From positions 186,001 through 250,000 of IMG/VR virus record IMGVR_UViG_3300020122_000238: 64,000 nt of DNA. One strand, written 5' to 3'. A program made the position numbers and the translations under genes. Shown in pieces: positions 6,290 through 28,423 of this stretch. Below the pieces are notes generated by a model. That model had not been told where the DNA came from. It saw nothing but the letters and a program-made list of their open reading frames with translations, and searched no databases. The number at the start of each line of letters is the position of its first letter. The first letter of the stretch is position 1.

Positions 6290-6294
6290 CGACC

Positions 6295-6468
6295 ATGAGC
6301 ATCGAGACGTTATCCGAAACACATGACTTAGGGTTTTGCGTCCGATGTCGAGGGGAAGGATATTTCCCCAAAACAGAGCGAATCTTTCGTTGCCCAGGCT
6401 GTCTCAGAGTTTCCAAGACAGCCTGGAATTACATCGACGCAACCCCTGACGAAGCACAGGACATCTGA
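6295..6468 (+). CDS. small zinc-finger protein (57 aa)
   Basis: CVRC and CPGC pairs; ATG 5 nt after the upstream stop. Confidence 0.5.
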   Translation: MSIETLSETHDLGFCVRCRGEGYFPKTERIFRCPGCLRVSKTAWNYIDATPDEAQDI

Positions 6469-6749
6469 TGCCTCCCCCCAAGCAGCCCTTCGTCATCGAC
6501 ATGCGCCACGACGAAACGGCGGACACGCACTACGGCGTCCGCCAAACCTGGGAAGAGGCGCTCCAGGTCGCCCGGAAGTACTGGGAGGGCTGCGACGGGG
6601 AATACGACGAGACGGCCAAGCAGCCGTTCAAGGCTGGGGAGGGGTACGACCAGCAGATATTCGTCAACATGCGCAAGGGCTCGTACCTGTTTCTCTCCGA
6701 TAGCGGAGGATCGGGCCCTTGCATTCGCATCGAACGTGCAACGAAGTGA
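6468..6749 (+). CDS. hypothetical protein
   Basis: TGATG coupling with the upstream ORF; GC3 bias. Confidence 0.65.
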   Translation: MPPPKQPFVIDMRHDETADTHYGVRQTWEEALQVARKYWEGCDGEYDETAKQPFKAGEGYDQQIFVNMRKGSYLFLSDSGGSGPCIRIERATK

Positions 6750-7001
6750 TTACTTCGCGATAGCCTTCGCGAGGTGCTTCAGGTAGGGACGAACGGGGGC
6801 GTTCGCGAAGTCGATCTTGACGAGCATCGTCTTGATCCCCGCCAGCTCCGTCACGGGGGCCGTCTTCATGACGTCCACGAGGATCCCGATGGTCATGTAG
6901 TTGGTCCCGCTGGGCCCCTCCACTTCGAGGGGCTCTTCGAGAGAGATTTCCTTCTCGCTGAGGAAGGTCTTGAGCCACGTCAGGAAGGTCTTAGTAGTCA
7001 T
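6750..7001 (-). CDS. hypothetical phage-type protein
   Basis: 83 aa; class I motif 8 nt upstream. Confidence 0.7.
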   Translation of the reverse strand: MTTKTFLTWLKTFLSEKEISLEEPLEVEGPSGTNYMTIGILVDVMKTAPVTELAGIKTMLVKIDFANAPVRPYLKHLAKAIAK

Positions 7002-7009
7002 GAAGTCCC

Positions 7010-7035
7010 TACAAATTTAGGGCCGCCCAGATCAA
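7010..7035 (-). promoter_or_regulatory. class I motif TTGATC-N16-TGTA
   Basis: 8 nt upstream of ATG 7001. Confidence 0.75.
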
Positions 7036-7082
7036 CCATGAAGTTGGGGATGTGTAACCCCTAATTCGGTGTAAGAAGGGTC

Positions 7083-7280
7083 ATGCCCAAAAAAGCCGAG
7101 AAGTTCTTCGTCACGACCCTCCAGGTTCAGGGGTCGGGCGAGTACCCCTGGGATATGCTCCGGTACGACATGTGCGGACCGAAGACGGAGGGGGAGAACC
7201 TCCGGGCGCACAAGGGACTCGCCGTCGTGGTCGTGGATTACGGGGTCGTCAAGATCTTCCCGGCGGGGATGACCAAGTGA
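7083..7280 (+). CDS. hypothetical protein
   Basis: 65 aa; GGTGTA at 7068-7073. Confidence 0.55.
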   Translation: MPKKAEKFFVTTLQVQGSGEYPWDMLRYDMCGPKTEGENLRAHKGLAVVVVDYGVVKIFPAGMTK

Positions 7281-7558
7281 GTCGCGAAGCCAAGAAGGCT
7301 CCGGGAGATGCCAAACTCCAGCGGGAGAAGCACCTCAAACGCCAAGCAGCTCAAGACGCCATCAGCGCCCTCAAGCGAGGGGAGACGGTCACGGTTCAGG
7401 CTTCTCACGAGGGCTGCCCCGTAACAGTGACCGTCACGCCTATCCCTGAAGAAGGGGCCTGGGGTGTACACGTTCTCTGTCTCGTCGGACGGCGCCTCCA
7501 GGTGATGTCCGACGAGACAAGGAGGGGCGGAACGTCATGGATCGCTTCGGAAGCCTGA
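7277..7558 (+). CDS. hypothetical protein
   Basis: GTG start overlapping the upstream TGA (GTGA). Confidence 0.5.
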   Translation: MSREAKKAPGDAKLQREKHLKRQAAQDAISALKRGETVTVQASHEGCPVTVTVTPIPEEGAWGVHVLCLVGRRLQVMSDETRRGGTSWIASEA

Positions 7559-7637
7559 CGATCCCCAACGAGCAAATCTACGGAATCGTCACCAAAAATC
7601 CCAACGACGCGTAACGCCCGATTTTCGGAGCTACCCC

Positions 7638-7847
7638 ATGATCGTGAAGTTGCAACGCTCTCTCGTCACACGCGAAAACAAAGAGCAAATGTTCCTCTAC
7701 AACGAGGACCGATCCGTGTGCTACCAGGGGGCCCTCACGTCATCCGTGAGAAAACTGATGAACGGGAAAAACAAGGTACACGTCGAGGCCGACCTCAAGA
7801 ATGGGCTTTCGGTCCTCAACGACATCGTACCGAACCAAGAGTGGTGA
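7638..7847 (+). CDS. hypothetical protein
   Basis: 69-aa ORF with natural composition. Confidence 0.55.
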   Translation: MIVKLQRSLVTRENKEQMFLYNEDRSVCYQGALTSSVRKLMNGKNKVHVEADLKNGLSVLNDIVPNQEW

Positions 7848-7874
7848 AATGATCTCTCTTCGTGTGTGGGTTGG

Positions 7875-7900
7875 TTGATCGGGGGTAGGGTTAATCTGTA
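7875..7900 (+). promoter_or_regulatory. class I motif TTGATC-N16-TGTA
   Basis: 8 nt upstream of ATG 7909. Confidence 0.75.
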
Positions 7901-7908
7901 GAGAAACC

Positions 7909-8277
7909 ATGTACCGAACCGCACCCCTCACCGATCGTACCTTCATGGAAACTCTCGCGTCCGAGATCGCGGAGGTCTTCTACAAGACTTCCCTCGAAAA
8001 CGGTACGCAGGACATCGTCATCACGGGCGTCTCCAGTCCGCGTGGGACGCACCTCCTCCGAGGCTACCCGCGGGACCAGTTCATCAACCTGGTGCTGGGC
8101 CCGAACCCGGACATGGAGAACGTTCCCGAGGAGCTGCGCAAGAGCGCCCTGGAGACGGCCCCGTGCGAGAGCGGCTGTGCCACCTGGATCCTCTTCCAGG
8201 AGGGAAGCCCGCGAGCCCCCATTCAGGTGTCGCTCATGCAGCTTCCGCCGCCCCCGCCCGCGTACTGTGACGCCTGA
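7909..8277 (+). CDS. hypothetical protein
   Basis: 122 aa directly after a class I motif. Confidence 0.7.
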   Translation: MYRTAPLTDRTFMETLASEIAEVFYKTSLENGTQDIVITGVSSPRGTHLLRGYPRDQFINLVLGPNPDMENVPEELRKSALETAPCESGCATWILFQEGSPRAPIQVSLMQLPPPPPAYCDA

Positions 8278-8288
8278 AAGGAATTCCA

Positions 8289-8912
8289 ATGAAAGAGCTT
8301 GCTGCTACTGGAATCTTCGGCTGGGAAGGTGCTGAACGTCGGAGCAATCGCTATGGCGCGATTCACATGTGCTCTGAACCCTATGAGGGGCCGGCTCGCG
8401 CCCTTGCCACACACAGGGGTTGTCTCATGACCTTGCTCGGGAAACGGGTTCATCTGACCGTCAAGGTCATCGAATCCCGCAAGAGCACACATCTGGGGGA
8501 TCAGGGACTTCGCATCTTCCCAATACAACCCGAAACGGGGGAGACGGTCGATCTCGGGGTCGGGTATCTTGGTGTTGAGCCAGGATGGGACGGGACCAAC
8601 GATATCGTGCTGAGGCCCGAGGATGGGCGCACGGTCTTTTGGCTGGACCCCCATAAGATGTACCGTCTCCACGATCAAACCGTCGAGGTTTACATCGAAG
8701 AGACGACCGCCCCATGCTCGCCCGCACCTGAGATCGAGGCGAGCACGGAACAGGAAGCCTTTGACAACGGGGAAGGCAGCTTCCAGCTCAAGAATGTGGC
8801 TGCGGGGGAAGAGATCCGCATCCTCCCCCACGTCGAGGACCTTGGGGGAGGAATGTTCTCCTTCAGCCTTCAGCCCGGCAAGGGCGTCAAGATGAAGGTC
8901 ACGAAGCTCTAG
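8289..8912 (+). CDS. hypothetical protein
   Basis: 207 aa, co-oriented and closely packed. Confidence 0.7.
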   Translation: MKELAATGIFGWEGAERRSNRYGAIHMCSEPYEGPARALATHRGCLMTLLGKRVHLTVKVIESRKSTHLGDQGLRIFPIQPETGETVDLGVGYLGVEPGWDGTNDIVLRPEDGRTVFWLDPHKMYRLHDQTVEVYIEETTAPCSPAPEIEASTEQEAFDNGEGSFQLKNVAAGEEIRILPHVEDLGGGMFSFSLQPGKGVKMKVTKL

Positions 8913-8943
8913 TTTTGGGGGTCTTCCGGTGTACTAGTTGCTC

Positions 8944-10074
8944 ATGGCAAGAGCACGCACCTCCAAGACCCCTGCAACTCCCACTCCCACGGAACCCGCC
9001 ACGGCTGCTCGCGAGCTTATTGTAAGCTTCGATACAACGGGATCGATGTTCCCCTGTCTCACCCAGGTGAGACGGAACGTTGGAGCCCTGATCGAGCGCA
9101 TGTTCCGCGAGGTCCCCGGCATCCGTATTGGGCTCATCGCCCACGGCGACTACTGCGACGGGCCCCGGATGATCAGCAAGCACGAGCTGTCCACCGACAT
9201 GCGCTCGCTCAGTCGCTTCGTCGAGACGACGGATTCGACGGGCGGCGGAGATGCGCCTGAGTGCTACGAAGCAGTTCTCCACGAAGCGAGGGGCTTCAAC
9301 TGGACGTCCGGCGAATCCAAGGCCCTTGTGATGATCGGGGATGAAGTTCCCCACGGCCCGGAAGAGCGGCAGAACCGGCACCACTACGACTGGCGCAACG
9401 AGGCCAACAGTCTTCGAGACATGGGCGTCAAAATCTACGGCGTCCAGTGCCTCAACCGCCGACACGCGACCAGCTTCTACTCGACGATCGCTCGCGTCAG
9501 CGGGGGCTACCACCTTCAGCTCGACCAGTTCGCGAACATCACAGAGCTGCTCCTCGCCGTCTCGTATCAGCAGGCGGGGGAGACCCAGCTCCAGAACTAC
9601 GAAGCCGAAGTCCAGGGCTCCGGCCGGATGACTCGGAACCTCGACGCGATCTTCGCTCGGCTGCGAGGGCGGACGGTGGCGGCCACCATGGGCACGACCG
9701 ATCTCCGGGCTGTCCCCTCGGGCCGGTTCCAGGTCCTCACGGTCGACCGCGAGATGGCCATCAAGGCGTTCTGCGAGGGGCAAGGCGTCACTTTCGGCAA
9801 GGGCAGGGGCTTCTACGAGCTGTCCAAGCCCGAGACGGTTCAGGGCACCAAGGAAATCGTTCTCATGGATCGTCGGACTGGGGACCTCTTCACGGGGCCG
9901 AAGGCTCGGGAGATGCTCTCGCTCCCGCTGCACGATGAAGACGTTCGCCTGCGTCCGGCTCACCTCGAAGAGTACGCCGTCTTCATTCAATCTACCTCTG
10001 TAAATAGAAAACTGGTGACTGGGACGCGCCTTCTGTACGAGATCCCGGACTGGGATGCCGCGGTGGCAGCCTGA
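8944..10074 (+). CDS. vWA domain protein
   Basis: MIDAS-like SFDTTGSM, GGGDAPECYE and LVMIGDE; GGTGTA 8928-8933 lies 10 nt before ATG 8944. Confidence 0.85.
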   Translation: MARARTSKTPATPTPTEPATAARELIVSFDTTGSMFPCLTQVRRNVGALIERMFREVPGIRIGLIAHGDYCDGPRMISKHELSTDMRSLSRFVETTDSTGGGDAPECYEAVLHEARGFNWTSGESKALVMIGDEVPHGPEERQNRHHYDWRNEANSLRDMGVKIYGVQCLNRRHATSFYSTIARVSGGYHLQLDQFANITELLLAVSYQQAGETQLQNYEAEVQGSGRMTRNLDAIFARLRGRTVAATMGTTDLRAVPSGRFQVLTVDREMAIKAFCEGQGVTFGKGRGFYELSKPETVQGTKEIVLMDRRTGDLFTGPKAREMLSLPLHDEDVRLRPAHLEEYAVFIQSTSVNRKLVTGTRLLYEIPDWDAAVAA

Positions 10075-14882: not shown

Positions 14883-17477
14883 ATGCCCTCACGATCTTTC
14901 GGAATCACCCCCAGTCTCTTCCTCGTCCTCGCCACCGTCAGCACGGCTACGGCGGCTACGGCGGGCCGTGTGCCCGTCAACAACTACGTCGCCATCGACG
15001 GGTCCGGCAGCATGTACGGGACCATCGACGACCTGCGAAACCAGGTCAAGATGAAGCTCCCGTCGATCATGGGGCCCGACGACACGCTCTCGATGGTCGT
15101 CTTCTCCAGCCGTGGCGAGGTCCACAAGGTCTGCGAGGGCGTCAAGACTTGGGATTTCAAGTCCGTCTACCCGCTCATCGATCGCCTGGTCCGCGCGACC
15201 AACATGACCGGCTTCATCGACCCCCTGAAGGAGATTGCCGCCATGCGCGATCGGGTCGGGGCGAAGCACCCGGGGGCCAACTCGTTCTGGTTCCTCTCCG
15301 ACGGCGACGAGAACCAGGGCAGCAGGGCTCAGGTCATCGAAGCCATGAAGCTCGCGTCCGCCAAGATGGACAGCGTGACGGTCGTCGAGTTCGGTCGGTA
15401 CGCCAACCGCGCGCTCCTGACCGACATGGCCACCACGGGCAACGGTCGCCGCATCTTCGCCCCCAACTTCGCGGCCTACGAGCCGGAGTTCGAGGCCACC
15501 ATGGGCCGCAAGCTCACGGGCGGCAAGCGTGTCGACGTCAAGCTCGACGGGGAGCCCGTCGCGGGCCTCGTGTACGGCTTCCAGGGCAACGATCTGCTCA
15601 CGTTCTCGGTCGCCAACGGACACGTCTCGGTTCCCAAGGACGTCTCGTTCATCTCGTACCTGTCGGCCAGCGCCGTAGGGGAAAACCAACACACCCTGGA
15701 GACCTTCGCGAAGGTCTCCGCCATGGGTGCAACTGCGAACCCCAGGGCCATTTCTCCCACAAGCGAGATGGCCCTCGGCGTCAACCATGCATACGCGGCT
15801 CTCAGCCTCTTCGCGGTGCGCCTCAAGGGCGAGGTCGTGATCCCGCTCCTCAAGTCCCTCGGCGATGTGAAGCTCATCGAGGCCTTCTCGACCTGCTTCG
15901 GCAAGGAGAAGTACTCCGACTTCGAGAAGCTCGCCCGTGAAGCGGCCTTCGGTCGCGGCCGGTTCGAGAAGGGCTACAACCCCGACGCCGTCCCTGCGGA
16001 CGACGCCTTCACGGTCTTCCGCCTCCTGGAGATCCTTACCAAGAACCAGGGCAACAAGCTCCGGATCGAGGAGTTCGAGAAGAGCTACGCGAAGATCGGC
16101 CGCGCGAAGATCGCTTCCGCCGAGAACCTCACGGTGGATGAAGCCGCGAAGGTCGAGGAGTACAACGCCGAGATCGACGTGCTCCGTGCGGACCTGAAGG
16201 GCAAGCGGTCGAGCATGGTCATCGAGCAGATCAAGGAGAAGATCGCCGCCGTCGAGGCGAAGATTCAGGTCATCCTGGACTCGAAGTCTCCGGCCCTCAA
16301 GTTCGAGGCGACCCCGGTCCCGGAAGGGATCCCGATGACGAACCTCATCTTCAACGAGGAGACCCCCAACGTCTCCGTGCAGACGACGCGTCAGGGCAAG
16401 GTGGCCCTCAAGGATCGGATCCAGGCGGAGATGGCTCGCCTCGTCGCGGACAGCAAGGCGAACCCCGCGAACGACAGCGAGAACGCAGACAAGCTCCTCC
16501 AGATCGCCAAGATCCCCGAGGTGATGGACACCTTCCGCTTCCGCAACTACGCGATCCTGAAGGATGGCTGGTGCAACGCCGACGAGCTTCCGGTGCGTCT
16601 GACGAAGGCGACCCTGGACGAGCTGGTCGCGGCGGGCTTCACGATGGCCATGCTCAAGGACCCGCCTGCCAGCTTCCCGACGGCGGGAAATGTCGACGTC
16701 ACGATCATCCTCAAGGGGATGCCGACAATGAACCGCCAGATGGTGAAGGAGACCAGCGCTCGCAAGCTCTTCGAGCTGGAGTACCGCCTCACCAAGCTCC
16801 GGGCGGAGCAGAAGGTCTACAAGGCCTTCAAGACCGAGACGGTGGGGGCGAAGAAGTCGGAAGGCTTCGTGGCCACCTACGGCGAGTACGCGGAGAAGTT
16901 CCTCAAGGAGCTGGGGCTCACGGAGTCCGGAGGCTTCGCTCCGAAGGTGACGACGGCCGACCCGATCGACTTCTACATGAGCCGGATCCTCACGGTCATG
17001 CTCTACGAGGAGGGCGCCAAGGACAAGATCGCGGCCGGCAAGGCAGCGACGGGCAAGCTCGACACGCTCCCCAGCATGGCGGAGCTGAACAAGAAGATCG
17101 CTGCGAACGGCAAGATGGCCGGCGGGGCGGCGCTCATGGCAGAGGTCGTCAAGGAGGTCGAGGCCTTCAAGAAGTCCGATGTCTACACGAAGGCGAAGGA
17201 CCCGGAGGCGCTCTTCGCGGCCTGGATCGAGGGACAGGCCGATCAGACGGTCAAGGAGACGCGTGCGGCGCTCCGTGAGAAGGCCCAGATGGTCTTCTCG
17301 ATCATCGTCGGGCAGGTCTGGTTCTCGGAGCCGGAGTACGCGACCCCGGTCGCCTTCACGATCCCGACGAAGAAGGACCCCAGGAACCTCCTCGGCACCC
17401 TGGCGACGATGACGACGGTCGACGGCTCCAAGGTCGACTTCATCGTCGGGCAGGAAGAGGAAAAGGTCCTCGTCTAG
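14883..17477 (+). CDS. large vWA domain protein (864 aa)
   Basis: N-terminal MIDAS VAIDGSGSM and FLSDGDEN; very strong GC3 bias. Confidence 0.85.
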   Translation: MPSRSFGITPSLFLVLATVSTATAATAGRVPVNNYVAIDGSGSMYGTIDDLRNQVKMKLPSIMGPDDTLSMVVFSSRGEVHKVCEGVKTWDFKSVYPLIDRLVRATNMTGFIDPLKEIAAMRDRVGAKHPGANSFWFLSDGDENQGSRAQVIEAMKLASAKMDSVTVVEFGRYANRALLTDMATTGNGRRIFAPNFAAYEPEFEATMGRKLTGGKRVDVKLDGEPVAGLVYGFQGNDLLTFSVANGHVSVPKDVSFISYLSASAVGENQHTLETFAKVSAMGATANPRAISPTSEMALGVNHAYAALSLFAVRLKGEVVIPLLKSLGDVKLIEAFSTCFGKEKYSDFEKLAREAAFGRGRFEKGYNPDAVPADDAFTVFRLLEILTKNQGNKLRIEEFEKSYAKIGRAKIASAENLTVDEAAKVEEYNAEIDVLRADLKGKRSSMVIEQIKEKIAAVEAKIQVILDSKSPALKFEATPVPEGIPMTNLIFNEETPNVSVQTTRQGKVALKDRIQAEMARLVADSKANPANDSENADKLLQIAKIPEVMDTFRFRNYAILKDGWCNADELPVRLTKATLDELVAAGFTMAMLKDPPASFPTAGNVDVTIILKGMPTMNRQMVKETSARKLFELEYRLTKLRAEQKVYKAFKTETVGAKKSEGFVATYGEYAEKFLKELGLTESGGFAPKVTTADPIDFYMSRILTVMLYEEGAKDKIAAGKAATGKLDTLPSMAELNKKIAANGKMAGGAALMAEVVKEVEAFKKSDVYTKAKDPEALFAAWIEGQADQTVKETRAALREKAQMVFSIIVGQVWFSEPEYATPVAFTIPTKKDPRNLLGTLATMTTVDGSKVDFIVGQEEEKVLV

Positions 17478-17480
17478 GGG

Positions 17481-17506
17481 TTGATCCGAGACATGGTTCC
17501 TCTGTA
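17481..17506 (+). promoter_or_regulatory. class I motif TTGATC-N16-TGTA
   Basis: 11 nt upstream of ATG 17518. Confidence 0.75.
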
Positions 17507-17517
17507 GAAGGGGGACC

Positions 17518-17775
17518 ATGTCTGACTCCTACTCCTCCCGCGTCGCGTTGACCCCCATTATCCGGTGGGTCACCCTCATCCTCCTCTTCGTGATGAAGCA
17601 TGGCGACCTGGTCCCCTCCCATGAGGGATCGGTCGACAGGTACGAGTCTCCCGAAGATTCGGATGAAGATTCGAATGACGAGGTCAATTTTCCTGGCAAC
17701 TCCGTTGACTTCACCCCCGTCGACTGTGTCGACGTAGACGACCTGGATTCAATCGAATCCTACGACATCGTCTGA
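17518..17775 (+). CDS. acidic hypothetical protein with N-terminal hydrophobic segment
   Basis: 85 aa after a class I motif. Confidence 0.55.
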   Translation: MSDSYSSRVALTPIIRWVTLILLFVMKHGDLVPSHEGSVDRYESPEDSDEDSNDEVNFPGNSVDFTPVDCVDVDDLDSIESYDIV

Positions 17776-17794
17776 TCCTGGTGTAACCCCCAGG

Positions 17795-17980
17795 ATGGCC
17801 ATGAAGCTCTTTCACGACGACGACTGCGGGGAACTCCTGGATCAGACCGGGATGTGCCCGAAGTGCAAGTTCTACCCGGACATGCAGAGCACCTCCTTCA
17901 AGGAAGTGTCGGATGCTGAGTATCGGTCCGGGAAGTCGCAAGGACAGACGTACCTCGGAAAGTATCGGACGCCGCTTTGA
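17795..17980 (+). CDS. small zinc-finger protein
   Basis: H.DDCG...CPKC; GGTGTA 17780-17785. Confidence 0.65.
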   Translation: MAMKLFHDDDCGELLDQTGMCPKCKFYPDMQSTSFKEVSDAEYRSGKSQGQTYLGKYRTPL

Positions 17981-18135
17981 TTACCCATCCCTCGAACATC
18001 ACCCAGGATGAAGCTCGGAACATCGGTCTTGCTGTGCTGACAGCAGGACTTGTGGCTGTTGTTGACAGCGTCATACGGCTCGGCTTCTACGAGTTTCAAG
18101 TGTGGCGCGAAGCACGTCGGAAAAAGCCCGAGTAA
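17977..18135 (+). CDS. small membrane protein (52 aa, not in ORF track)
   Basis: TTGA overlap start; IGLAVLTAGLVAVV hydrophobic stretch followed by a basic tail. Confidence 0.45.
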   Translation: MITHPSNITQDEARNIGLAVLTAGLVAVVDSVIRLGFYEFQVWREARRKKPE

Positions 18136-18229
18136 CAAGCTACACCCCGGTGTAGCCGGGTGGCATGAAGCTACTCGGAATTTCTGGGCTTGTCGTTTTC
18201 TATTGCCCCACACAGACACCCAGGACATA

Positions 18230-19558
18230 ATGCGGGCTATGTCTTACCGCAAGATATCAACACGGCGTTTGGAAGTCTACGGCATCTCGGGCAACAAGGG
18301 ACATGGCAAGGACACCTTCGCCAACCTCATCACACAGGCAAACACATCTTACAAAGTTGTCCCTTTCGCAGGGGCACTGAAGCGTATGTCAGCCAGGATC
18401 TTTGGGCTGACATACGCTCAGATGAACGATCCCTCCCTCAAAGAGATACCCCTTCCTCATGCCCGGGACATGGATCTGTTCGTCCCAGCCATGAAAGCCG
18501 AGACTGGACTACACATACAACCGGCGGGCAAGATTGCCCATAGTCCTCGTGAGGTCATGCAGTTTTTCGGGACAGAATATGTCCGAAGGATTCAGGACGA
18601 CTACTGGATCCAAAAACTACTCGCTGAGGTGGGAAACTCTCGACAAGTGCTCATTCCCGACGTCCGCTTTCCGAACGAAGCGGCTGCACTACGTTCTTAT
18701 GGGGGCATCATAATCAAGGTGGAACGGATCGATGCTCCCGTTCCGAAGGATGGGCATCTCTCCGAGACAGAGATGGCCAAAATCATCCCGGATCTTCTAG
18801 TGGGCGCACGGACAGGGGATCTGTCCCTTCCGTCTCGGATCGCGCGTCTCATTGCGATGAACCGTTTCGATTCTGCTACCAGCTACGACTATCGTAAGTC
18901 TAAGGAAGCAATTGCTTCCTATACATCAGGGAAGAGCGCCGAGGAGAGTTCTCTTCTCCTCGGCCACAAGCACCCCTATGCGCTCTACAACACCCTAGAT
19001 TACTATGGGGTACAGCGCCGAAAGCAGGCCCCAAACCGTGTCCACCATAAAGTTGTTGATGGGGTGGTTGGTAAATTCTGCATTCGGTGTGTGTGGCAAC
19101 CTCTGATTGAGTTCAACATGAGCACGAAGGCATGGGACGGTAAACATAGCTTGTGCCGTGCTTGCGCTTCTTTGGATCACAAGGATCGATACCAGAAGTA
19201 CGGGAAGACGGACAGCCTGTCGAGGGTCTACGCGATTTCGAAGAAACAAGCGGCGCAGCGTGGCATTCCCTTCAACTTGAGGGCGAGTGACATCCAATTC
19301 CTTTGGAATGCACAGGGAGGTCGTTGTACTTACAGCGGGCTGGAGATGACGACCGAGCTGAGATCCCCCAACAAGGTCACGATTGACAGAATTGATTCAT
19401 CGAAGGGGTATGAGATCGACAATATCGTTCTCTGCGGCTACCGCGTCAACTTGATGAAACGAGAAATGTCCTTGAGCGAGTTCAAGGGAATGATCCGCAC
19501 GTTGTACGAAAATCTGGCGGGAAGCTCATTCGGGTCGTGCGGCCCGGGGCTGGGCTGA
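18230..19558 (+). CDS. deoxynucleoside monophosphate kinase fused to an HNH-type endonuclease
   Basis: GNKGHGKDT P-loop, PREVMQFFGTE, DVRFPNE; C-terminal CTYSG...TIDRIDSSKGYEIDNIVLC. Confidence 0.85.
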   Translation: MRAMSYRKISTRRLEVYGISGNKGHGKDTFANLITQANTSYKVVPFAGALKRMSARIFGLTYAQMNDPSLKEIPLPHARDMDLFVPAMKAETGLHIQPAGKIAHSPREVMQFFGTEYVRRIQDDYWIQKLLAEVGNSRQVLIPDVRFPNEAAALRSYGGIIIKVERIDAPVPKDGHLSETEMAKIIPDLLVGARTGDLSLPSRIARLIAMNRFDSATSYDYRKSKEAIASYTSGKSAEESSLLLGHKHPYALYNTLDYYGVQRRKQAPNRVHHKVVDGVVGKFCIRCVWQPLIEFNMSTKAWDGKHSLCRACASLDHKDRYQKYGKTDSLSRVYAISKKQAAQRGIPFNLRASDIQFLWNAQGGRCTYSGLEMTTELRSPNKVTIDRIDSSKGYEIDNIVLCGYRVNLMKREMSLSEFKGMIRTLYENLAGSSFGSCGPGLG

Positions 19559-19704
19559 AGGGGGCCACGGGGCTGCACGTGAGCGAGGTTGAGCAGATGT
19601 CGATCCCCAACGAGGACTTCCACGTTGTCATCGTCAACGACGGGACCCTCGATGACCTGGCAGTCTCCGCCCGGAAGGCAGCCGAGCATTTGCTCTTTGG
19701 TTGA
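19516..19704 (+). pseudogene. orphan 3' remnant of a second dNMP kinase
   Basis: startless frame GGKLIRVVRPGAGLKGATGLHVSEVEQMSIPNEDFHVVIVNDGTLDDL...* matches the dNMP-kinase C-terminus (GG.IxV.R...HxSE...D.xI.NDGTL). Confidence 0.75.
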
Positions 19705-19741
19705 GGGCATTTTGGTGTAAGATCCCCCAGGAGGATCTTCC

Positions 19742-20047
19742 ATGGGCTGGGCTGCACACCACATCGCGAAGCTTCAAAAGGGTGAGGTCGTTCAATTTCG
19801 ACCTCACGGTCACTCGATGACGGGGAAGATCGAGAGCGGCCAGCTCGTGACAATCGAGCCCTTGCTGATGGCGACCACCCTGGAGCCAGGGGACATCGTT
19901 CTTTGCAAGGTGAAGGGCAACGAGTACGTTCACCTCATCTCCGCGGTGCGCGATCGGCAGTACCAGATATCCAACAATCGCGGACATGTCAACGGGTGGG
20001 TGACCCGAGGAGCTATCTTCGGGAAGTGCGTGCGGGTGGAGCCATGA
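19742..20047 (+). CDS. S24/S26 peptidase-like single-domain protein
   Basis: GHSMTGKIESGQLV...PGDIVL...YVHLI. Confidence 0.65.
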   Translation: MGWAAHHIAKLQKGEVVQFRPHGHSMTGKIESGQLVTIEPLLMATTLEPGDIVLCKVKGNEYVHLISAVRDRQYQISNNRGHVNGWVTRGAIFGKCVRVEP

Positions 20048-20253
20048 ATTACCGTGCGACCACACATCTGTCGTTCGGGCCTGGGAGAAACCTACTCCTC
20101 AGAGTAGGTGAGACCACTTCTTCAGAAGTGGTCAGAAAACACCCCGCACTTCAAGGAGCCATTCGCCAGGGGTGGTTGGTGGAAGTCCCTGAAGTCTCGC
20201 ATGAGATATACCCCACCTGGCAAGCCCATTTACTTGCGGACGAGACCATCTGA
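20044..20253 (+). CDS. small paralogue 1 with C-terminal TW..LL-acidic tag
   Basis: MNYRAT...AIRQGWL...PTWQAHLLADETI. Confidence 0.7.
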   Translation: MNYRATTHLSFGPGRNLLLRVGETTSSEVVRKHPALQGAIRQGWLVEVPEVSHEIYPTWQAHLLADETI

Positions 20254-20255
20254 GC

Positions 20256-20444
20256 ATGCCGTATAGGGCGACCCGAGAATTCTACTACTCGCTGATGCTC
20301 GGCGACATCACGGTATACAAAGACGACATCGTATCGGACTGGGAAGTGAAAGAGTACAATCTGGAGGACGCCATCAAGCAGGGTTGGCTCATCTCATCCG
20401 AGCCCCCTACTTGGCAAGAGCGCTTGCTCGCGGACGACATATGA
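20256..20444 (+). CDS. small paralogue 2 with C-terminal tag
   Basis: MPYRAT...AIKQGWL...PTWQERLLADDI. Confidence 0.7.
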   Translation: MPYRATREFYYSLMLGDITVYKDDIVSDWEVKEYNLEDAIKQGWLISSEPPTWQERLLADDI

Positions 20445-20638
20445 AGTACCGCGCTTTGAGCCCGTTCATAATGGGTCCCTTCACAGACCCTTTATCGTTG
20501 AGCAAGGGGTCTGTGGTGAGCACAGAGGACTTCGCGAAGTACCCGTACCTGACGCATGCCCTGAAGCAGGGGTATCTGGAGGAAATCCCTGAGCCGAAGG
20601 TCTTGACATGGCACGACCACCTCATGGAAGACGACTGA
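20441..20638 (+). CDS. small paralogue 3 with C-terminal tag
   Basis: MKYRAL...ALKQGYL...LTWHDHLMEDD. Confidence 0.7.
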   Translation: MKYRALSPFIMGPFTDPLSLSKGSVVSTEDFAKYPYLTHALKQGYLEEIPEPKVLTWHDHLMEDD

Positions 20639-20645
20639 GGGTGCC

Positions 20646-21439: not shown

Positions 21440-22156
21440 ATGAGTCACACGTACGAATATCCCCGACCGTCTGTCACGGTCGACTGCGTTGTCTTCGGCG
21501 TCGCAGACCATCTCAAGGAGATGCACGTTCTCCTGGTCCGCCGTGGCTCCGCCCCCTTTCAGGGGTTGTGGGCTCTTCCGGGCGGGTTCGTCGAGACCTC
21601 GGATACCAGAGACCAGGGTGAGTCCCTGGACGAAGCGGCGCAACGTGAGCTGAGCGAGGAGACGGGAGCCCAAGTGGGTTTTCTGGAGCAGCTCGGCACG
21701 TATGGGACGCCCGGAAGGGATCCGCGAGGTCGAGTGATCTCGGTCGCCTACTACGCTCTGGTCCGCCTCGAAGACCATCCGGTCAAGGGTGGTGATGACG
21801 CGGCAGAGGCCAAGTGGTGGCCTCTGCCGAAAGCCCTCCGGCTATACAAGGCTTTCGACCACGACAAGATTCTCAAGGATGCTTGGGCGAGGCTACAGGC
21901 GAAGGTTCGGTATGCCCCCATCGGGTTCAACCTTCTTCCGCCGAAGTTCTCTCTGACGGAGCTGCAATCCCTCTACGAGCTGATCCTCAATCGGACGCTC
22001 GACAAGCGGAACTTCCGCAAGCGCATCCTGGCAATGGGCATCCTCAAAGAGGCGGGTGTCCAGGTTGGTGTCCCGCACCGACGAGCGTGCCTCTACAGAT
22101 TCGACAGCGTTGCTTACAAGCGAGCTGTTCGTGACGGTTTCAACTTCGAGATTTGA
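21440..22156 (+). CDS. nrtR: NrtR-family Nudix/wHTH transcriptional regulator
   Basis: [44 protein letters not shown] and [10 protein letters not shown]; adjacent to nadV. Confidence 0.85.
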
Positions 22157-22166
22157 TGGAGACCCC

Positions 22167-23552
22167 ATGACCACGTACGAAACGAACCCGATCCTCGACA
22201 CCGATAGCTACAAGCTCTCGCACCCCGAGCTGCAATACCCGGCGAACATGACGAGCATGTTCCACTACTTCGAGTCGCGCGGTGGCCGCTACGGCTCGAC
22301 CCTCTTCTTCGGCCTCAGCTATCTGTGCCAGGAGTACCTCAGCAAGGGCTTCACGCAGGACCACGTCAACGAGGCGGCCGACTTCGCCGCAGCCCACGGT
22401 GAGCCCTTCCCCAAGGCCGCCTGGGACCGTCTGGTGGCCAAGGGCGGCTACTACCCGGTGAAGATCAACGCGGTCCCGGAAGGCACGCTCGTCCCGACGC
22501 ACAACGTGCTCATGACGACGGAGTCGACGGACCCCGAGGCCCCGTGGGTCGGTTCGTGGATCGAGAACCAGCTCGTGCGCCTCTGGTATCCGATCACCGT
22601 CGCCACCCAGTCGTTCTTCATCAAGAAGATCATCTTCGAGGCCCTCGTGAAGTCCTCGGATGATCCGGTCGGCGAGATCGGATTCAAGCTCCACGACTTC
22701 GGCAGCCGTGGCGTCAGCTCGCGGGAATCGGCTGGCATCGGCGGCATGAGCCACCTGGTCAACTTCCTCGGTTCGGACACCATCGAGGGCATCCGCTACG
22801 CCAACCACTACTACACGGACAAGATGGCGGGCTTCTCGATCCCCGCGTCGGAGCACTCGACGATCACGAGCTGGGGCAAGTCGAACGAGATCGACGCCTA
22901 CCGCAACATGGTTCACCAGTTCGCGAAGCCGGGCAAGATGTTCGCCTGCGTCAGCGACTCCTACGATCTCTACAACACGGTCGAGAACATCTGGGGTGAC
23001 ATCCTCCGCGAGGAGATCAAGGAGTCGGGTGCGACCCTCGTGATCCGGCCGGACTCGGGCAATCCCTCGGAGGTCATCCTCAAGTGCCTCCAGATCTTGG
23101 AGCGCAAGGTCGGGATGACGACCAACACCAAGGGCTTCAAGGTCCTCCCGAAGTACATCCGCCTGATCCAGGGCGACGGCGTGAACGAAGAGTCGATTCG
23201 CGAGATCCTCAACGTGATGATGGCCAACGGCTACAGCGCCTCGAACATCGGATTCGGCATGGGTGGCGCTCTGCTCCAGGGTGTCAATCGCGACACCCAG
23301 CGCTTCGCCTACAAGTGCTCGGAGGTCCTGGTCGATGGTGAGACCCGCGAGGTCTTCAAGGACCCCGTCACCGACAAGGGCAAGCGCTCGAAAGCGGGCC
23401 GCGTCGACCTCATCCACGAGAACAGCGAGTTTAAGACCGTTCGGGGTACACGTCGGAACAGCGCTCTCATCTCGGTCTTTGAGAACGGCAAGATCCTGGT
23501 TCAGCCGACCCTCGCCGAGATCCGGAAAATCTCGGAACGTCACATCTTCTGA
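22167..23552 (+). CDS. nadV: nicotinamide phosphoribosyltransferase (NAMPT)
   Basis: DTDSYKLSH, LHDFGSRG, PASEHST, VSDSYD, VIRPDSG, IQGDG, FGMGGALLQ. Confidence 0.95.
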   Translation: MTTYETNPILDTDSYKLSHPELQYPANMTSMFHYFESRGGRYGSTLFFGLSYLCQEYLSKGFTQDHVNEAADFAAAHGEPFPKAAWDRLVAKGGYYPVKINAVPEGTLVPTHNVLMTTESTDPEAPWVGSWIENQLVRLWYPITVATQSFFIKKIIFEALVKSSDDPVGEIGFKLHDFGSRGVSSRESAGIGGMSHLVNFLGSDTIEGIRYANHYYTDKMAGFSIPASEHSTITSWGKSNEIDAYRNMVHQFAKPGKMFACVSDSYDLYNTVENIWGDILREEIKESGATLVIRPDSGNPSEVILKCLQILERKVGMTTNTKGFKVLPKYIRLIQGDGVNEESIREILNVMMANGYSASNIGFGMGGALLQGVNRDTQRFAYKCSEVLVDGETREVFKDPVTDKGKRSKAGRVDLIHENSEFKTVRGTRRNSALISVFENGKILVQPTLAEIRKISERHIF

Positions 23553-26861: not shown

Positions 26862-27106
26862 TCATGGGACGCCTGGTAGTTACCGTGAGGGGAGAATGCG
26901 AGCACCACAAGCGACGCGGACATCTACTGTGATGTCCGCGTCGCTTGTGGTGCAACGATCCTCCGCGTCGAGATGATAGGGGACTACCCCTCCACGGGCG
27001 CCCACATCTACGTGAAGTGCCAAAAATCTCCCGCCGAGCTGTCCGCGGCTATCGACGCTGCGGACGAGATCCCGCAATATTCAATCAGGACGGAAGTAGA
27101 GCGAAA

Positions 27107-28423
27107 ATGAGTAACGTAATCCTGATCGCGGGCCTCAACTACGGAGATGAGGGCAAGGGGACGACCGTCGACTACCTCGCTCGGAAGCACGAAGCGCACA
27201 CGGTCGTCCGCTACAACGGCGGAGCCCAAGCAGGCCATTCGGTGGTCCTGGAGGATGATCGGCACCACACCTTCGCCCAGTTCGGGAGCGCCACCTTCGT
27301 CCCTGGGGTGAAGACGCACCTCAGCCGGCACATGCTCATCAACCCGATCTTCATGATGTCTGAGGAGAAGCACCTCCGCACTGTCGGCGTCGAGGATGCC
27401 TTCGAACGGATGACCATCGAACGGGATGCGCTGATCACGACTCCCTACCATGTCGCCGCGAATCGCATCCGGGAGATGGCTCGCTCAAACCGCCACGGAT
27501 CTTGTGGGATGGGAATCGGCGAGACGGTGAGCAGTCACCTGTTCCACCCTCAAGAGGATCTCCGGATTGGGGATCTGGAAGGGCCAATCACCGCGCGATT
27601 GGAGCAGATCCGAGCGCGGTATTTGTGGGAGCTGGCTACTCTGCACATTCCCGAGTGCAAGTTCCGCGACTACGATTGCATCTGCCCGTTCAAGCATGAA
27701 TGGGGCATGCTCTTGAACAAGAGCCTTCTCCCCTTGATTGTGGGGTTGCTCACGGGATTTCTCAAGCTCCCGCTCAAGGTTGTCGATGAGACCTACCTCC
27801 CGCTCATCATGGGGGAAGGGACCACGATCTTCGAGGGTGCTCAGGGTGTCCTCCTTGATCAGGACTACGGGTTCCACCCCTACACGACCTGGTCCGACAC
27901 GACCTTCAGCAACGCCCTCAACCTGATCGAAGGCTTCTCTGGAGACGTAAGGAAGATCGGGATCGTTCGATCCTACATGACCCGGCACGGGGCGGGCCCA
28001 TTCGTCACGGAAGATGTCACCCTCCAGCTCCCCTCCACGAAGGTTGAGCACAACTCGCTCAATCCCTGGCAATCGAATTTCCGGGTGGGGCATTTCGACG
28101 CCTTCGCGACCAATTACGCCCTCAAGGTGATTGGGGGTGTCGACGAGATCGCCATGACACACTGCGATGTGCCAAGTAGTGGTAAAATTTGTGTTGGATA
28201 CAGGGGAGAGTTTACCCCCGAAGTGCTTCAGGATATGCCGCATGTGAAGCATATTCGTGAAGACCTCGACGTTCGTACGGGTATCACAAATGCTCTTTTC
28301 AATGTCTTTCCGGTGTACTTGACCGATGTGGCAGAGAAGGATTTCATCCCCAAAATTGAAGATTTCGTGGGGACTCCCATCACCATCAAGTCGTACGGCC
28401 CCACGGCCAAGGACAAGCGATAA
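27107..28423 (+). CDS. divergent adenylosuccinate synthetase (PurA)-like ligase
   Basis: GDEGKG, GGAQAGH, EGAQGVLLD, TRHGAGPF and SYGP are present; the aspartate-binding TTGRxR loop is replaced by HNSLNPWQSNFR. Confidence 0.85.
   Translation: MSNVILIAGLNYGDEGKGTTVDYLARKHEAHTVVRYNGGAQAGHSVVLEDDRHHTFAQFGSATFVPGVKTHLSRHMLINPIFMMSEEKHLRTVGVEDAFERMTIERDALITTPYHVAANRIREMARSNRHGSCGMGIGETVSSHLFHPQEDLRIGDLEGPITARLEQIRARYLWELATLHIPECKFRDYDCICPFKHEWGMLLNKSLLPLIVGLLTGFLKLPLKVVDETYLPLIMGEGTTIFEGAQGVLLDQDYGFHPYTTWSDTTFSNALNLIEGFSGDVRKIGIVRSYMTRHGAGPFVTEDVTLQLPSTKVEHNSLNPWQSNFRVGHFDAFATNYALKVIGGVDEIAMTHCDVPSSGKICVGYRGEFTPEVLQDMPHVKHIREDLDVRTGITNALFNVFPVYLTDVAEKDFIPKIEDFVGTPITIKSYGPTAKDKR

Follow-up and report, generated by a model that had tools for sequence, protein, structure and literature searches.

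A 1323 bp cassette encoding a dNMP kinase fused to a predicted PacI-type HNH nuclease domain has replaced the middle of the resident kinase gene in a 275 kb phage contig. The stretch analysed here, referred to as the window, comprises 64,000 nucleotides of this contig (IMG/VR record IMGVR_UViG_3300020122_000238, positions 186,001 to 250,000), and all features of the window described below are on its plus strand. Similar replacements have occurred independently in two other phage lineages, one of them with the fusion gene inverted, and the resident-side junctions fall at nearly the same position of the kinase gene. The cassette is best read as a homing-type "cut and replace" element, although nuclease activity is inferred from sequence and predicted structure alone. 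The initial annotation had described an AT-richer ORF for a complete kinase fused to an HNH domain, its last codons overlapping a GC-rich, startless frame for a second kinase C-terminus, and this observation is confirmed. Its reading of the locus as a self-contained gene-replacement drive is only partly supported: the structural part holds fully, while support for the drive is circumstantial, though much better than the window alone provides.

Replacement of the resident kinase gene

A sister phage (L024, about 90% nucleotide identity) carries an intact "plain" kinase gene of 239 aa (L024 13295-14014) at the same locus, as do L025 and 84-88 kb contigs from three public sequencing runs. The kinase of these endonuclease-free relatives ends in the sequence stranded in the window, a check that the initial annotation had itself proposed. 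By blastn, window 18148-18192 corresponds to L024 13278-13322 (93% identity) and window 19516-19728 to L024 13826-14038 (86% identity, E 2e-68), on either side of the replaced segment. Window 18193-19515 (1323 bp) therefore stands in place of 503 bp (L024 13323-13825, resident codons 10-177), and the same joint is seen in the contigs of the three runs that carry the endonuclease-free form. A direct search of viral contigs for relatives of the remnant returned nothing; the relatives were instead found through the neighbouring 864-aa gene.

The initial annotation held that the resident gene had been overwritten up to the GG motif. However, a 5′ stub also survives, consisting of the ATG at 18165 and codons 2-9 (MKLLGISGL), with homology to L024 ending at 18192. 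From the resident ATG a residual 21-codon ORF runs from 18165 to 18230, and its TAA stop overlaps the first ATG of the fusion ORF (TAATG); possible translational coupling is an inference. A hairpin at 18139-18156 (GCTACAC..GTGTAGC) upstream of the resident start belongs to the resident backbone rather than to the cassette, as it is shared with L024 upstream of the plain kinase and with another relative, L026, upstream of its fusion gene.

The 3′ remnant at 19516-19704 comprises codons 178-239 plus the stop, beginning at GGKLIRVV, and has no usable N-terminus or P-loop. Its first 43 nt are also read in another frame as the tail of the fusion ORF, such that the last 13 codons and the stop of that ORF come from resident DNA. 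The remnant differs from L024 by 13 synonymous and 8 non-synonymous codons, with no stop. The frame 19414-19704 matches PHROG 139 positions 205-259 (E 1.9e-7), but matches Pfam DNMK positions 180-230 only at E 0.0086, below the cut-off; the decisive evidence for its identity is the DNA match to L024. A terminator-like hairpin plus T-run at 19691-19719, a consensus match only, is the retained 3′ signal of the resident gene. The compositional contrast described in the initial annotation is real, with the cassette at 52.3% GC (GC3 0.62) and the remnant at 65.1% GC (GC3 0.84).

An intron or intein interrupting a single kinase gene is excluded. Rfam returned no group I or group II match at gathering score over the window and only chance matches at E up to 10 over 17400-20400, and no tRNA genes and no Hint domain were found. 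Although the ORF lies within a gene and the remnant lies downstream on the same strand, the two are in different frames, the fusion ORF has its own complete kinase including the C-terminal motifs, and resident codons 10-177 are absent, so that splicing could restore nothing. Nor does the cassette resemble a transposon, as it has no terminal inverted or direct repeats, no target duplication and no transposase, and holds one ORF. An assembly chimera is very unlikely. The exact junctions of the window were found in no other metagenome contig, viral contig or sequencing run, and the arrangement rests on one assembly. However, neither joint has shared sequence that could mislead an assembler, two joints 1.3 kb apart would be needed inside a backbone that is itself about 10% diverged from L024, and analogous arrangements occur in two unrelated assemblies (L040 and L042/L043, described below), that of L042 being seen in two samples.

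Domain organization of the fusion ORF

The fusion ORF spans 18230-19558 and encodes 442 aa without stops (P0001). Judging from the N-termini of its relatives, the likely natural start is the second in-frame ATG at 18239. The region 18203-18238 is a 5′ element that travels with the cassette and holds a sigma-70-like match (TTGCCC, 17 nt, CATAAT) and a degenerate copy of a hairpin that directly precedes the start codon in other family members, clear hairpins being seen in L029, L032, L033, L036, L039 and L040. The 46 nt upstream of the start could be read as a promoter giving a leaderless mRNA, but only the window and L029 fit that consensus, and the promoter remains only a possibility; the hairpin next to the start codon is the feature that is actually conserved.

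The kinase domain (18269-18865, residues about 14-212) is of the T4 gp1 type. It matches Pfam DNMK (PF21448) at 44.6 bits against a cut-off of 27.1 and PHROG 139 at E 1.8e-37, and the AF2 model (pLDDT 81.5) matches T4 dNMP kinase 1dek_A by Foldseek at E 3.4e-8. Family-invariant residues are kept, and the P-loop GISGNKGHGKDT and the GG..K..R..H.SE motifs are conserved across the family. The kinase is only distantly related to the plain kinase (28% amino acid identity) and has GGIII in place of GGKLI, with no DNA similarity. It is followed by a helical linker (18866-19003, residues 213-258; YDYR...LDYYG), which many kinases of this subfamily have with or without the nuclease, and by a zinc ribbon (19046-19165, residues 273-312) with invariant C284, C287, C309 and C312, three strands in the model and partial hits to PHROG 5558/2633.

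The C-terminal domain (19217-19522, residues about 330-431) is a predicted His-Me finger (HNH) nuclease of the PacI type, which corrects the plain HNH assignment of the initial annotation, with Arg where the HNH histidine normally sits. It hits PHROG endonuclease/HNH families (PHROG 1035/3322/3118) at E 1e-20 to 1e-24, whereas no Pfam HNH model matches at E up to 0.1. A profile of the family hits PacI (3ldy_A) at E 1.6e-6, and Foldseek matches the model to 3ldy_A at E 1.5e-3 (probability 1.0, TM(target) 0.54). The invariant residues are C366, D386-R387, G393-Y394, N398, N407 and K410. The motif DR.D..GY..N..N..K is shared with PacI, in that D386-R387 aligns with PacI "DR" and G393-Y394 with PacI "GY", both invariant in 18 sequences; in PacI the tyrosine replaces the catalytic histidine (PMC5714182). 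The domain is therefore plausibly active. Two zinc sites per subunit are expected of PacI-type nucleases; here one invariant CxxC...CxxC ribbon is present, and in the core only two of the four expected cysteines (C366 and C402) are kept.

The fusion family and its recurrence in kinase genes

The fusion is a conserved family found at about 15 loci. Eleven full-length relatives have 39-71% identity to the C-terminal part (residues 216-442), all carry DNMK, and the zinc ribbon and nuclease motif are invariant. In all six loci measured (the window plus five others), the fusion gene or cassette has 1-7 points lower GC than the sequence around it. No near-identical DNA was found in cultured phages, and no cultured phage record covers 80% or more of the fusion protein. 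A quick tree of the kinase domain, which is poorly resolved, places 9 of 10 fusion genes in one loose clade and pairs P0001 with P0123; we draw no conclusion from it on the number of gains or losses. No other dNMP kinase and no second copy of the nuclease domain were found on the 275 kb contig.

Two other members also sit inside broken plain-type kinase genes. L040 has a plain-type 5′ stub (E 5e-10) and 3′ stub (E 2e-19) around its fusion gene, together with a 146-nt second copy of the 3′ end of the upstream Transgly gene, which looks carried in from the donor. L042 has a plain-type 3′ stub (89% to P0247, E 1e-26) on the opposite strand, abutting the fusion gene. Each has its own endonuclease-free relative (L064/L065 and L063, respectively), defining replacements of 470 and 1365 bp. 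The three resident kinases are only about 51-56% identical to each other and the three fusion alleles 50-58% identical, and the events are therefore independent. The resident-side junctions lie at columns 191, 192 and 206 of a 252-column alignment, that is, at GG|K twice and 15 codons downstream once, at or near the GG(K) motif to which the initial annotation pointed, while the other junction lies at codon 10, at codon 32 or beyond the gene. This clustering has P = 0.014 under a uniform model, but with only three junctions the statistic is weak.

Ordinary phage mosaicism, in which the cassette entered by random illegitimate recombination between co-infecting phages without any part played by the nuclease, is an unlikely but not negligible alternative. 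In this view, only recombinants that kept a working kinase and the signals of the neighbours survived, which would explain why kinase-for-kinase swaps are what is seen. The region is mosaic anyway, as the window and L024 differ by several other indels and replacements close by (17593-17794, 17920-18147, L024 14039-14303, and 7311-9900), and both joints lack homology and transposon marks. In addition, 12 of 15 loci show no remnant. The cut-and-replace reading is also limited by other family members: in L026, L029, L032 and L036 the fusion gene sits cleanly in the same nucleotide and NAD metabolism neighbourhood and could be an ordinary, vertically inherited gene there. The fusion gene often occupies this locus in the wider phage group, so "resident" and "invader" hold for this lineage only. 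Identity between the fusion proteins of the window and L026 (72%) is close to that of flanking proteins (46-68%), indicating that the cassette came from within the same phage group rather than from afar. Against mosaicism, three independent insertions of the same gene family fall into the same target gene family, in two orientations, with junctions clustered at one motif. A random process would rarely put a 1.3-1.5 kb piece inside the one gene it can replace, and selection explains a minimum stub length but not a maximum.

It is also possible, though we consider it unlikely, that the fusion is a bifunctional metabolic enzyme whose nuclease degrades host DNA to dNMPs for re-phosphorylation by the fused kinase, and that it displaces plain kinases because it is better for the phage. 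The two parts have been co-inherited over 39-72% identity with an invariant nuclease motif, the gene lies near Nuc_deoxyri_tr2, NUDIX-NrtR and NAMPT genes, and viral PacI homologues have been speculated to be host-degrading "restrictases" (PMC5714182). However, the nuclease part appears dispensable and decays while the kinase stays intact: it is deleted in L035, split off by a 2.6 kb insertion in L030, and in a different frame from the kinase in L031, L036 and L037, although some of these frame changes may be assembly errors. The zinc ribbon and linker resemble the DNA-binding add-ons of site-specific enzymes, and the nuclease type behaves as a mobile gene here, as L024 has a free-standing 189-aa homologue between two conserved genes that the window lacks, a presence/absence polymorphism like that of homing genes. 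Nor does this reading explain why the insertions land inside kinase genes at one motif.

A proposed homing-type cut-and-replace element and its closest parallels

We favor, with moderate confidence, a model in which the nuclease made from a cassette-bearing genome during co-infection breaks plain-type kinase genes at or next to the codons of the conserved GGK(L/V)(I/V)R motif. The 3′ side of the break would be kept almost to the break, while the 5′ side would be resected over a variable distance, and the gap would be repaired by copying the cassette from the donor without homology, through illegitimate or microhomology joints, leaving a 5′ and a 3′ stub. The fused kinase differs at the target codons and would therefore be immune while supplying the lost enzyme, so that the element would carry both the cutter and the rescue copy. 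Our analysis establishes the anatomy of the locus, the replacement and its exact borders, its recurrence in three lineages, the junction clustering and the PacI-type motif, whereas nuclease activity and specificity, the target site and the resistance of the fused allele, the resection asymmetry, kinase function and the expression signals are inferences.

The model is close to the intronless homing of free-standing endonuclease genes in T-even phages (SegF/gene 56, SegG/gene 32 and MobE/nrdB; PMC2988022, PMC2790892). There, a nuclease gene lies next to, or in, a conserved nucleotide-metabolism gene, is present in some close relatives and absent in others, and is thought to cut the endonuclease-free allele and to be copied in together with the linked, resistant allele of the target gene. 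The presence/absence polymorphism is seen here in all three pairs of loci. However, the presumed resistant "allele" is translationally fused to the nuclease and is a distant xenologue, leaving no homology for repair; the joints are illegitimate, stubs of the target remain, and no co-conversion tract is visible, the flanks staying L024-like right up to both joints. The nuclease is PacI-type, not Seg (GIY-YIG) or Mob (classical HNH).

A second parallel exists in mobile endonuclease ORFs of fungal mitochondria that carry a foreign gene C-terminus (Allomyces atp6; Glomus atp6, atp9, cox2 and nad3; PMC3630166). As in the window, the endonuclease ORF is in phase with a carried replacement copy, and the native end is left stranded downstream, close in sequence to relatives that lack the element. 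Those elements carry only the C-terminal piece, downstream of a retained native 5′ part, and encode LAGLIDADG or GIY-YIG enzymes, whereas here a whole kinase gene is carried upstream of a PacI-type domain, a 5′ stub also remains, and the host is a phage. PacI itself (His-Me finger group 20; PDB 3ldy, 3m7k; PMC5714182), which shares the motif, the tyrosine in place of the catalytic histidine and, so far as the cysteines are kept here, the zinc-binding elements flanking the core, belongs to a predominantly viral group but is a 142-aa stand-alone homodimeric restriction enzyme, whereas here the domain is the C-terminal third of a kinase fusion. F-CphI and the DHHRN (Endo VII-motif) homing endonucleases (PMC6083498) include a free-standing phage homing endonuclease built on an Endo VII-like beta-beta-alpha-metal core, and PHROG 1035, labelled "endonuclease VII", is the best PHROG hit of P0001; but the defining H41 and H43 are replaced by R387 and D389, and P0001 is not a member. 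Synthetic "cleave and rescue" (ClvR/TARE-type) gene drives follow the same logic, in that a nuclease that destroys a needed gene is linked to a cleavage-resistant rescue copy. Those drives are engineered Cas9 systems in animals that act through killing of non-carriers, whereas here the system is natural, in phages, and spread would be by copying into the broken gene.

A more far-reaching and tentative possibility is that the fusion is a natural "cleave-and-rescue" gene drive of large phages. The nuclease domain would cut the GGK-motif codons of plain-type dNMP kinase genes in co-infecting phages, and the fused kinase, too diverged to be cut, would replace the destroyed function, so that the one-gene element could invade unrelated phage lineages in either orientation and without any flanking homology.

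Homing endonuclease genes are known to spread linked to a resistant allele of the gene they cut; here the linkage has become a single protein and the "allele" a distant xenologue. The three invaded/uninvaded genome pairs make the idea directly testable in vitro without culturing the phages. If the nuclease does target plain-type kinase genes, the cassette is a minimal natural cut-and-replace element that needs no homology arms, a mechanism for xenologous gene displacement in phages, and a natural counterpart of engineered cleave-and-rescue drives. It could yield new rare-cutting enzymes whose target can be guessed from genomic scars, and would also give the first biological role to phage members of the little-studied PacI branch of HNH nucleases.

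Architecture of the kinase-nuclease fusion ORF

The window covers bases 186001-250000 of a 275.3 kb IMG/VR viral contig that is estimated to be 58% complete, and derives from a large phage known only from metagenomes. No cultured phage was found to share DNA with the region. A single ORF runs from 18230 to 19558 and encodes a protein of 442 aa (P0001). Its N-terminal 215 residues are a dNMP kinase of the T4 gp1 type, supported by a Pfam DNMK score of 44.6 bits against a cut-off of 27.1 and by a match to PHROG 139 at E 1.8e-37. The AlphaFold model (pLDDT 81.5) has T4 dNMP kinase 1dek as its best PDB match, at E 3.4e-8. The kinase is followed by a helical linker, a four-cysteine ribbon, and a domain that matches PHROG "endonuclease VII/HNH" families at E 1e-20 to 1e-24 but no Pfam HNH model. 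Downstream, in another frame, 19516-19704 encodes the last 62 residues of a kinase, which match PHROG 139 positions 205-259 at E 1.9e-7. The cassette is AT-richer (52.3% GC, GC3 0.62) than this remnant (65.1% GC, GC3 0.84). The initial annotation had described a complete dNMP kinase fused to an HNH domain in an AT-richer ORF, overlapping a GC-rich, startless second kinase C-terminus, and this observation holds.

The nuclease domain carries Arg (R387) where HNH and Endo VII enzymes have their catalytic histidine, and therefore fails the DHHRN/Endo VII definition. A profile built from this domain and free-standing phage homologues hits the restriction enzyme PacI (3ldy) at E 1.6e-6, with the motif DR.D..GY..N..N..K shared, and PacI was also found by a Foldseek search. 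PacI is the known case in which the histidine is missing and a loop tyrosine does its job, and its group is mostly viral (PMC5714182). Residues D386, R387, G393, Y394, N398, N407 and K410 are invariant in the family. An active nuclease is therefore plausible, although activity is inferred here from sequence and predicted structure alone.

Replacement of a resident kinase gene

A search with the neighboring 864-aa gene returned two contigs, L024 and L025, with 91% protein identity and about 90% DNA identity to the window around the locus. These sister-phage contigs lack the endonuclease and carry an intact 239-aa "plain" kinase (P0122), located at L024 13295-14014. Window 18148-18192 matches the region from just upstream of the start of this gene through codon 9 (93%), and window 19516-19728 matches from its codon 178 (GGKLIRVV) through the stop and beyond (86%), while nothing in between matches. 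That endonuclease-free relatives should have a kinase ending in the remnant sequence had been set beforehand as a test, and these relatives do. Thus 1323 bp (18193-19515) stand where 503 bp of the resident gene stood. Contigs of 84-88 kb from three public runs (one from sediment and two from microbial mats) show the same arrangement relative to the window, passing from 18192 to 19516, skipping 1323 letters and holding 503 in between. P0122 and the fused kinase are only 28% identical and share no DNA similarity. The plain type is the common one, with 1713 hits in a word search against 122 for the other subfamily.

Splicing cannot restore the resident gene, because resident codons 10-177 are gone, and an Rfam search found no intron. 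The resident ATG (18165) now opens a 21-codon ORF, whose TAA overlaps the first ATG of the fusion ORF. The fusion ORF lost about three codons of its natural end and runs 13 codons into resident DNA before it meets a stop. The remnant has no stop and differs from L024 by 13 synonymous and 8 non-synonymous codons; it has therefore not decayed much. There are no terminal repeats.

Further mosaic differences from L024 lie next to the kinase locus (window 17593-18147 and 19729-19740, compared with L024 12687-13277 and 14039-14303). The upstream small gene keeps its first roughly 40 codons but has a different C-terminal part (61 aa in the window, 157 aa in L024), and L024 has an extra 56-aa ORF downstream of the kinase that the window lacks. 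About 2.6 kb of the window (7311-9900) likewise has no counterpart at the corresponding place in L024 (3953/3937), representing another indel between the two phages. Nuclease-independent mosaic recombination combined with selection is a rival explanation for the kinase replacement itself.

The fusion family and its genomic neighborhood

The fusion is a family. Eleven full-length relatives (379-595 aa) have 39-71% identity over the C-terminal part (residues 216-442), and all carry DNMK. The closest relative, P0123 (72% identity), lies in a 377 kb contig (L026) that is syntenic with the window, both having the 840/864-aa gene, the S24-like gene, NUDIX-NrtR and NAMPT. In L026 the fusion gene starts exactly where the plain kinase starts in L024, behind the same hairpin, and no remnant is present. 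Flanking proteins are 46-68% identical between the window and L026; the donor therefore belonged to the same broad phage group. In the six loci measured (the window plus five others), the fusion gene or cassette is 1-7 GC points below the sequence around it.

In the window, a NUDIX-NrtR-type regulator/hydrolase (238 aa) is followed by an ORF orthologous to the NAMPT gene annotated in L026 (67% aa identity). Together (21440-23552) they look like a phage NAD-salvage module, conserved in L024, L026 and another family locus, L036. A second rival explanation is that the fusion is a bifunctional salvage enzyme. Window 20047-20640 holds three tandem, paralogous small ORFs of about 62-70 aa, which begin M.YRA and end in W..(R/H)L(L/M)(A/E)(D/E)D. 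L026 has one copy on the other side of the S24-like gene, so gene order differs between the relatives.

Two hairpin elements recur at these loci. A recurring GGTGTAG-containing hairpin or motif lies 8-20 nt upstream of start codons at the kinase locus in several of these phages, whichever kinase type follows (window 18139-18164, L024 13268-13294, L026 5975-6000, and the upstream regions of L027, L031, L041 and L042). A second, conserved hairpin directly abuts the start codon of many fusion genes in otherwise different contexts (L029, L032, L033, L036, L039 and L040). Its arms read roughly ACCCCACTC...GAGTGGGGT, often preceded by TTGAC, and the window has a degenerate copy at 18203-18238. This hairpin could control translation or transcription of the cassette.

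The nuclease part is sometimes lost or damaged while the kinase stays intact. Among the relatives, it is deleted in L035, separated by a 2.6 kb insertion in L030, and in a different frame from the kinase in L031, L036 and L037, although some of these frame changes may be assembly errors. In L030, residues about 15-365 are encoded at 4031-5107 and the nuclease core (residues about 361-426) at 7743-7939, with about 2.6 kb (5108-7742) holding four ORFs, one with a pyruvate-kinase Pfam hit, in between. L024 has a free-standing 189-aa PacI-type HNH homologue of the nuclease (21609-22178, motif GIDRKNNSLGY...CCAICN) between a conserved 120-aa gene and the adenylosuccinate-synthetase-like gene, in an interval (L024 21554-22200) where the window has only 275 nt (26862-27136). 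This is a second endonuclease presence/absence polymorphism between the two phages. These are the habits of homing endonuclease genes.

Recurrent insertion and a proposed cut-and-replace mechanism

The flanks of all fetched family loci were scanned in six frames with a kinase HMM, and this revealed two more cases. In L040, a plain-type 5′ stub (32 codons; E 5e-10) and a 3′ stub (45 codons; 76% to P0140, E 2e-19) flank the fusion gene. The last 146 nt of the upstream Transgly gene occur twice in this contig (1877-2022 and 2321-2466; 92.5% identical), the second copy lying between the 5′ stub and the fusion gene. In L029, Transgly lies directly upstream of the fusion gene, whereas in L032 and L036 a Nuc_deoxyri_tr2 gene separates the two. 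The copy therefore looks carried in from the donor with the cassette. The endonuclease-free relatives L064/L065 show that 470 bp were replaced. In L042/L043, a plain-type 3′ stub (89% to P0247, E 1e-26) lies on the opposite strand, 16 nt from the start of the fusion gene. The relative L063 shows that 1365 bp were replaced here, covering the first 544 nt of the kinase gene and the whole upstream gene. The three resident kinases are 51-56% identical to each other and the three fusion alleles are 50-58% identical; these are three independent events.

In a protein alignment of the three intact plain kinases, the resident-side junctions fall at columns 191, 192 and 206 of 252, that is, before or within GG|K twice and 15 codons downstream once. 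The other junction lies at codon 10, at codon 32, or outside the gene. Three uniform junctions would lie this close in 1.4% of trials. Different ends of the cassette are joined to this same spot, so microhomology with the cassette does not explain it.

The logic of the element matches the intronless homing of Seg and Mob genes in T-even phages. In anatomy it is closest to fungal mitochondrial mobile ORFs that bring a foreign gene C-terminus and strand the native one (PMC3630166). It differs in that a whole xenologous gene is translationally fused to a PacI-type nuclease, the joints are illegitimate, and stubs remain on both sides. Our literature searches found no description of a kinase-HNH fusion.

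The simplest account is a break made in plain-type kinase genes at or near the GGK codons, followed by variable loss on the 5′ side and homology-free copying of the cassette. The fused kinase reads GGIII at that point and is unlike the target in DNA. A precedent for a nuclease staying bound to one break product, and so protecting it, exists in T4 intron homing. The anatomy of the fusion, the replacement and its borders, its recurrence in three lineages, the clustering of junctions and the PacI-type motif rest directly on the sequence comparisons, whereas nuclease activity, its target, the asymmetric loss at the break, kinase activity and expression are inferred. The interpretation in the initial annotation, that an endonuclease fused to its own replacement copy of the target gene acts as a self-contained gene-replacement drive, is partly supported: the structural part fully, the drive part only circumstantially. 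In this view, and as that annotation proposed, the element would unite cutter and rescue copy.
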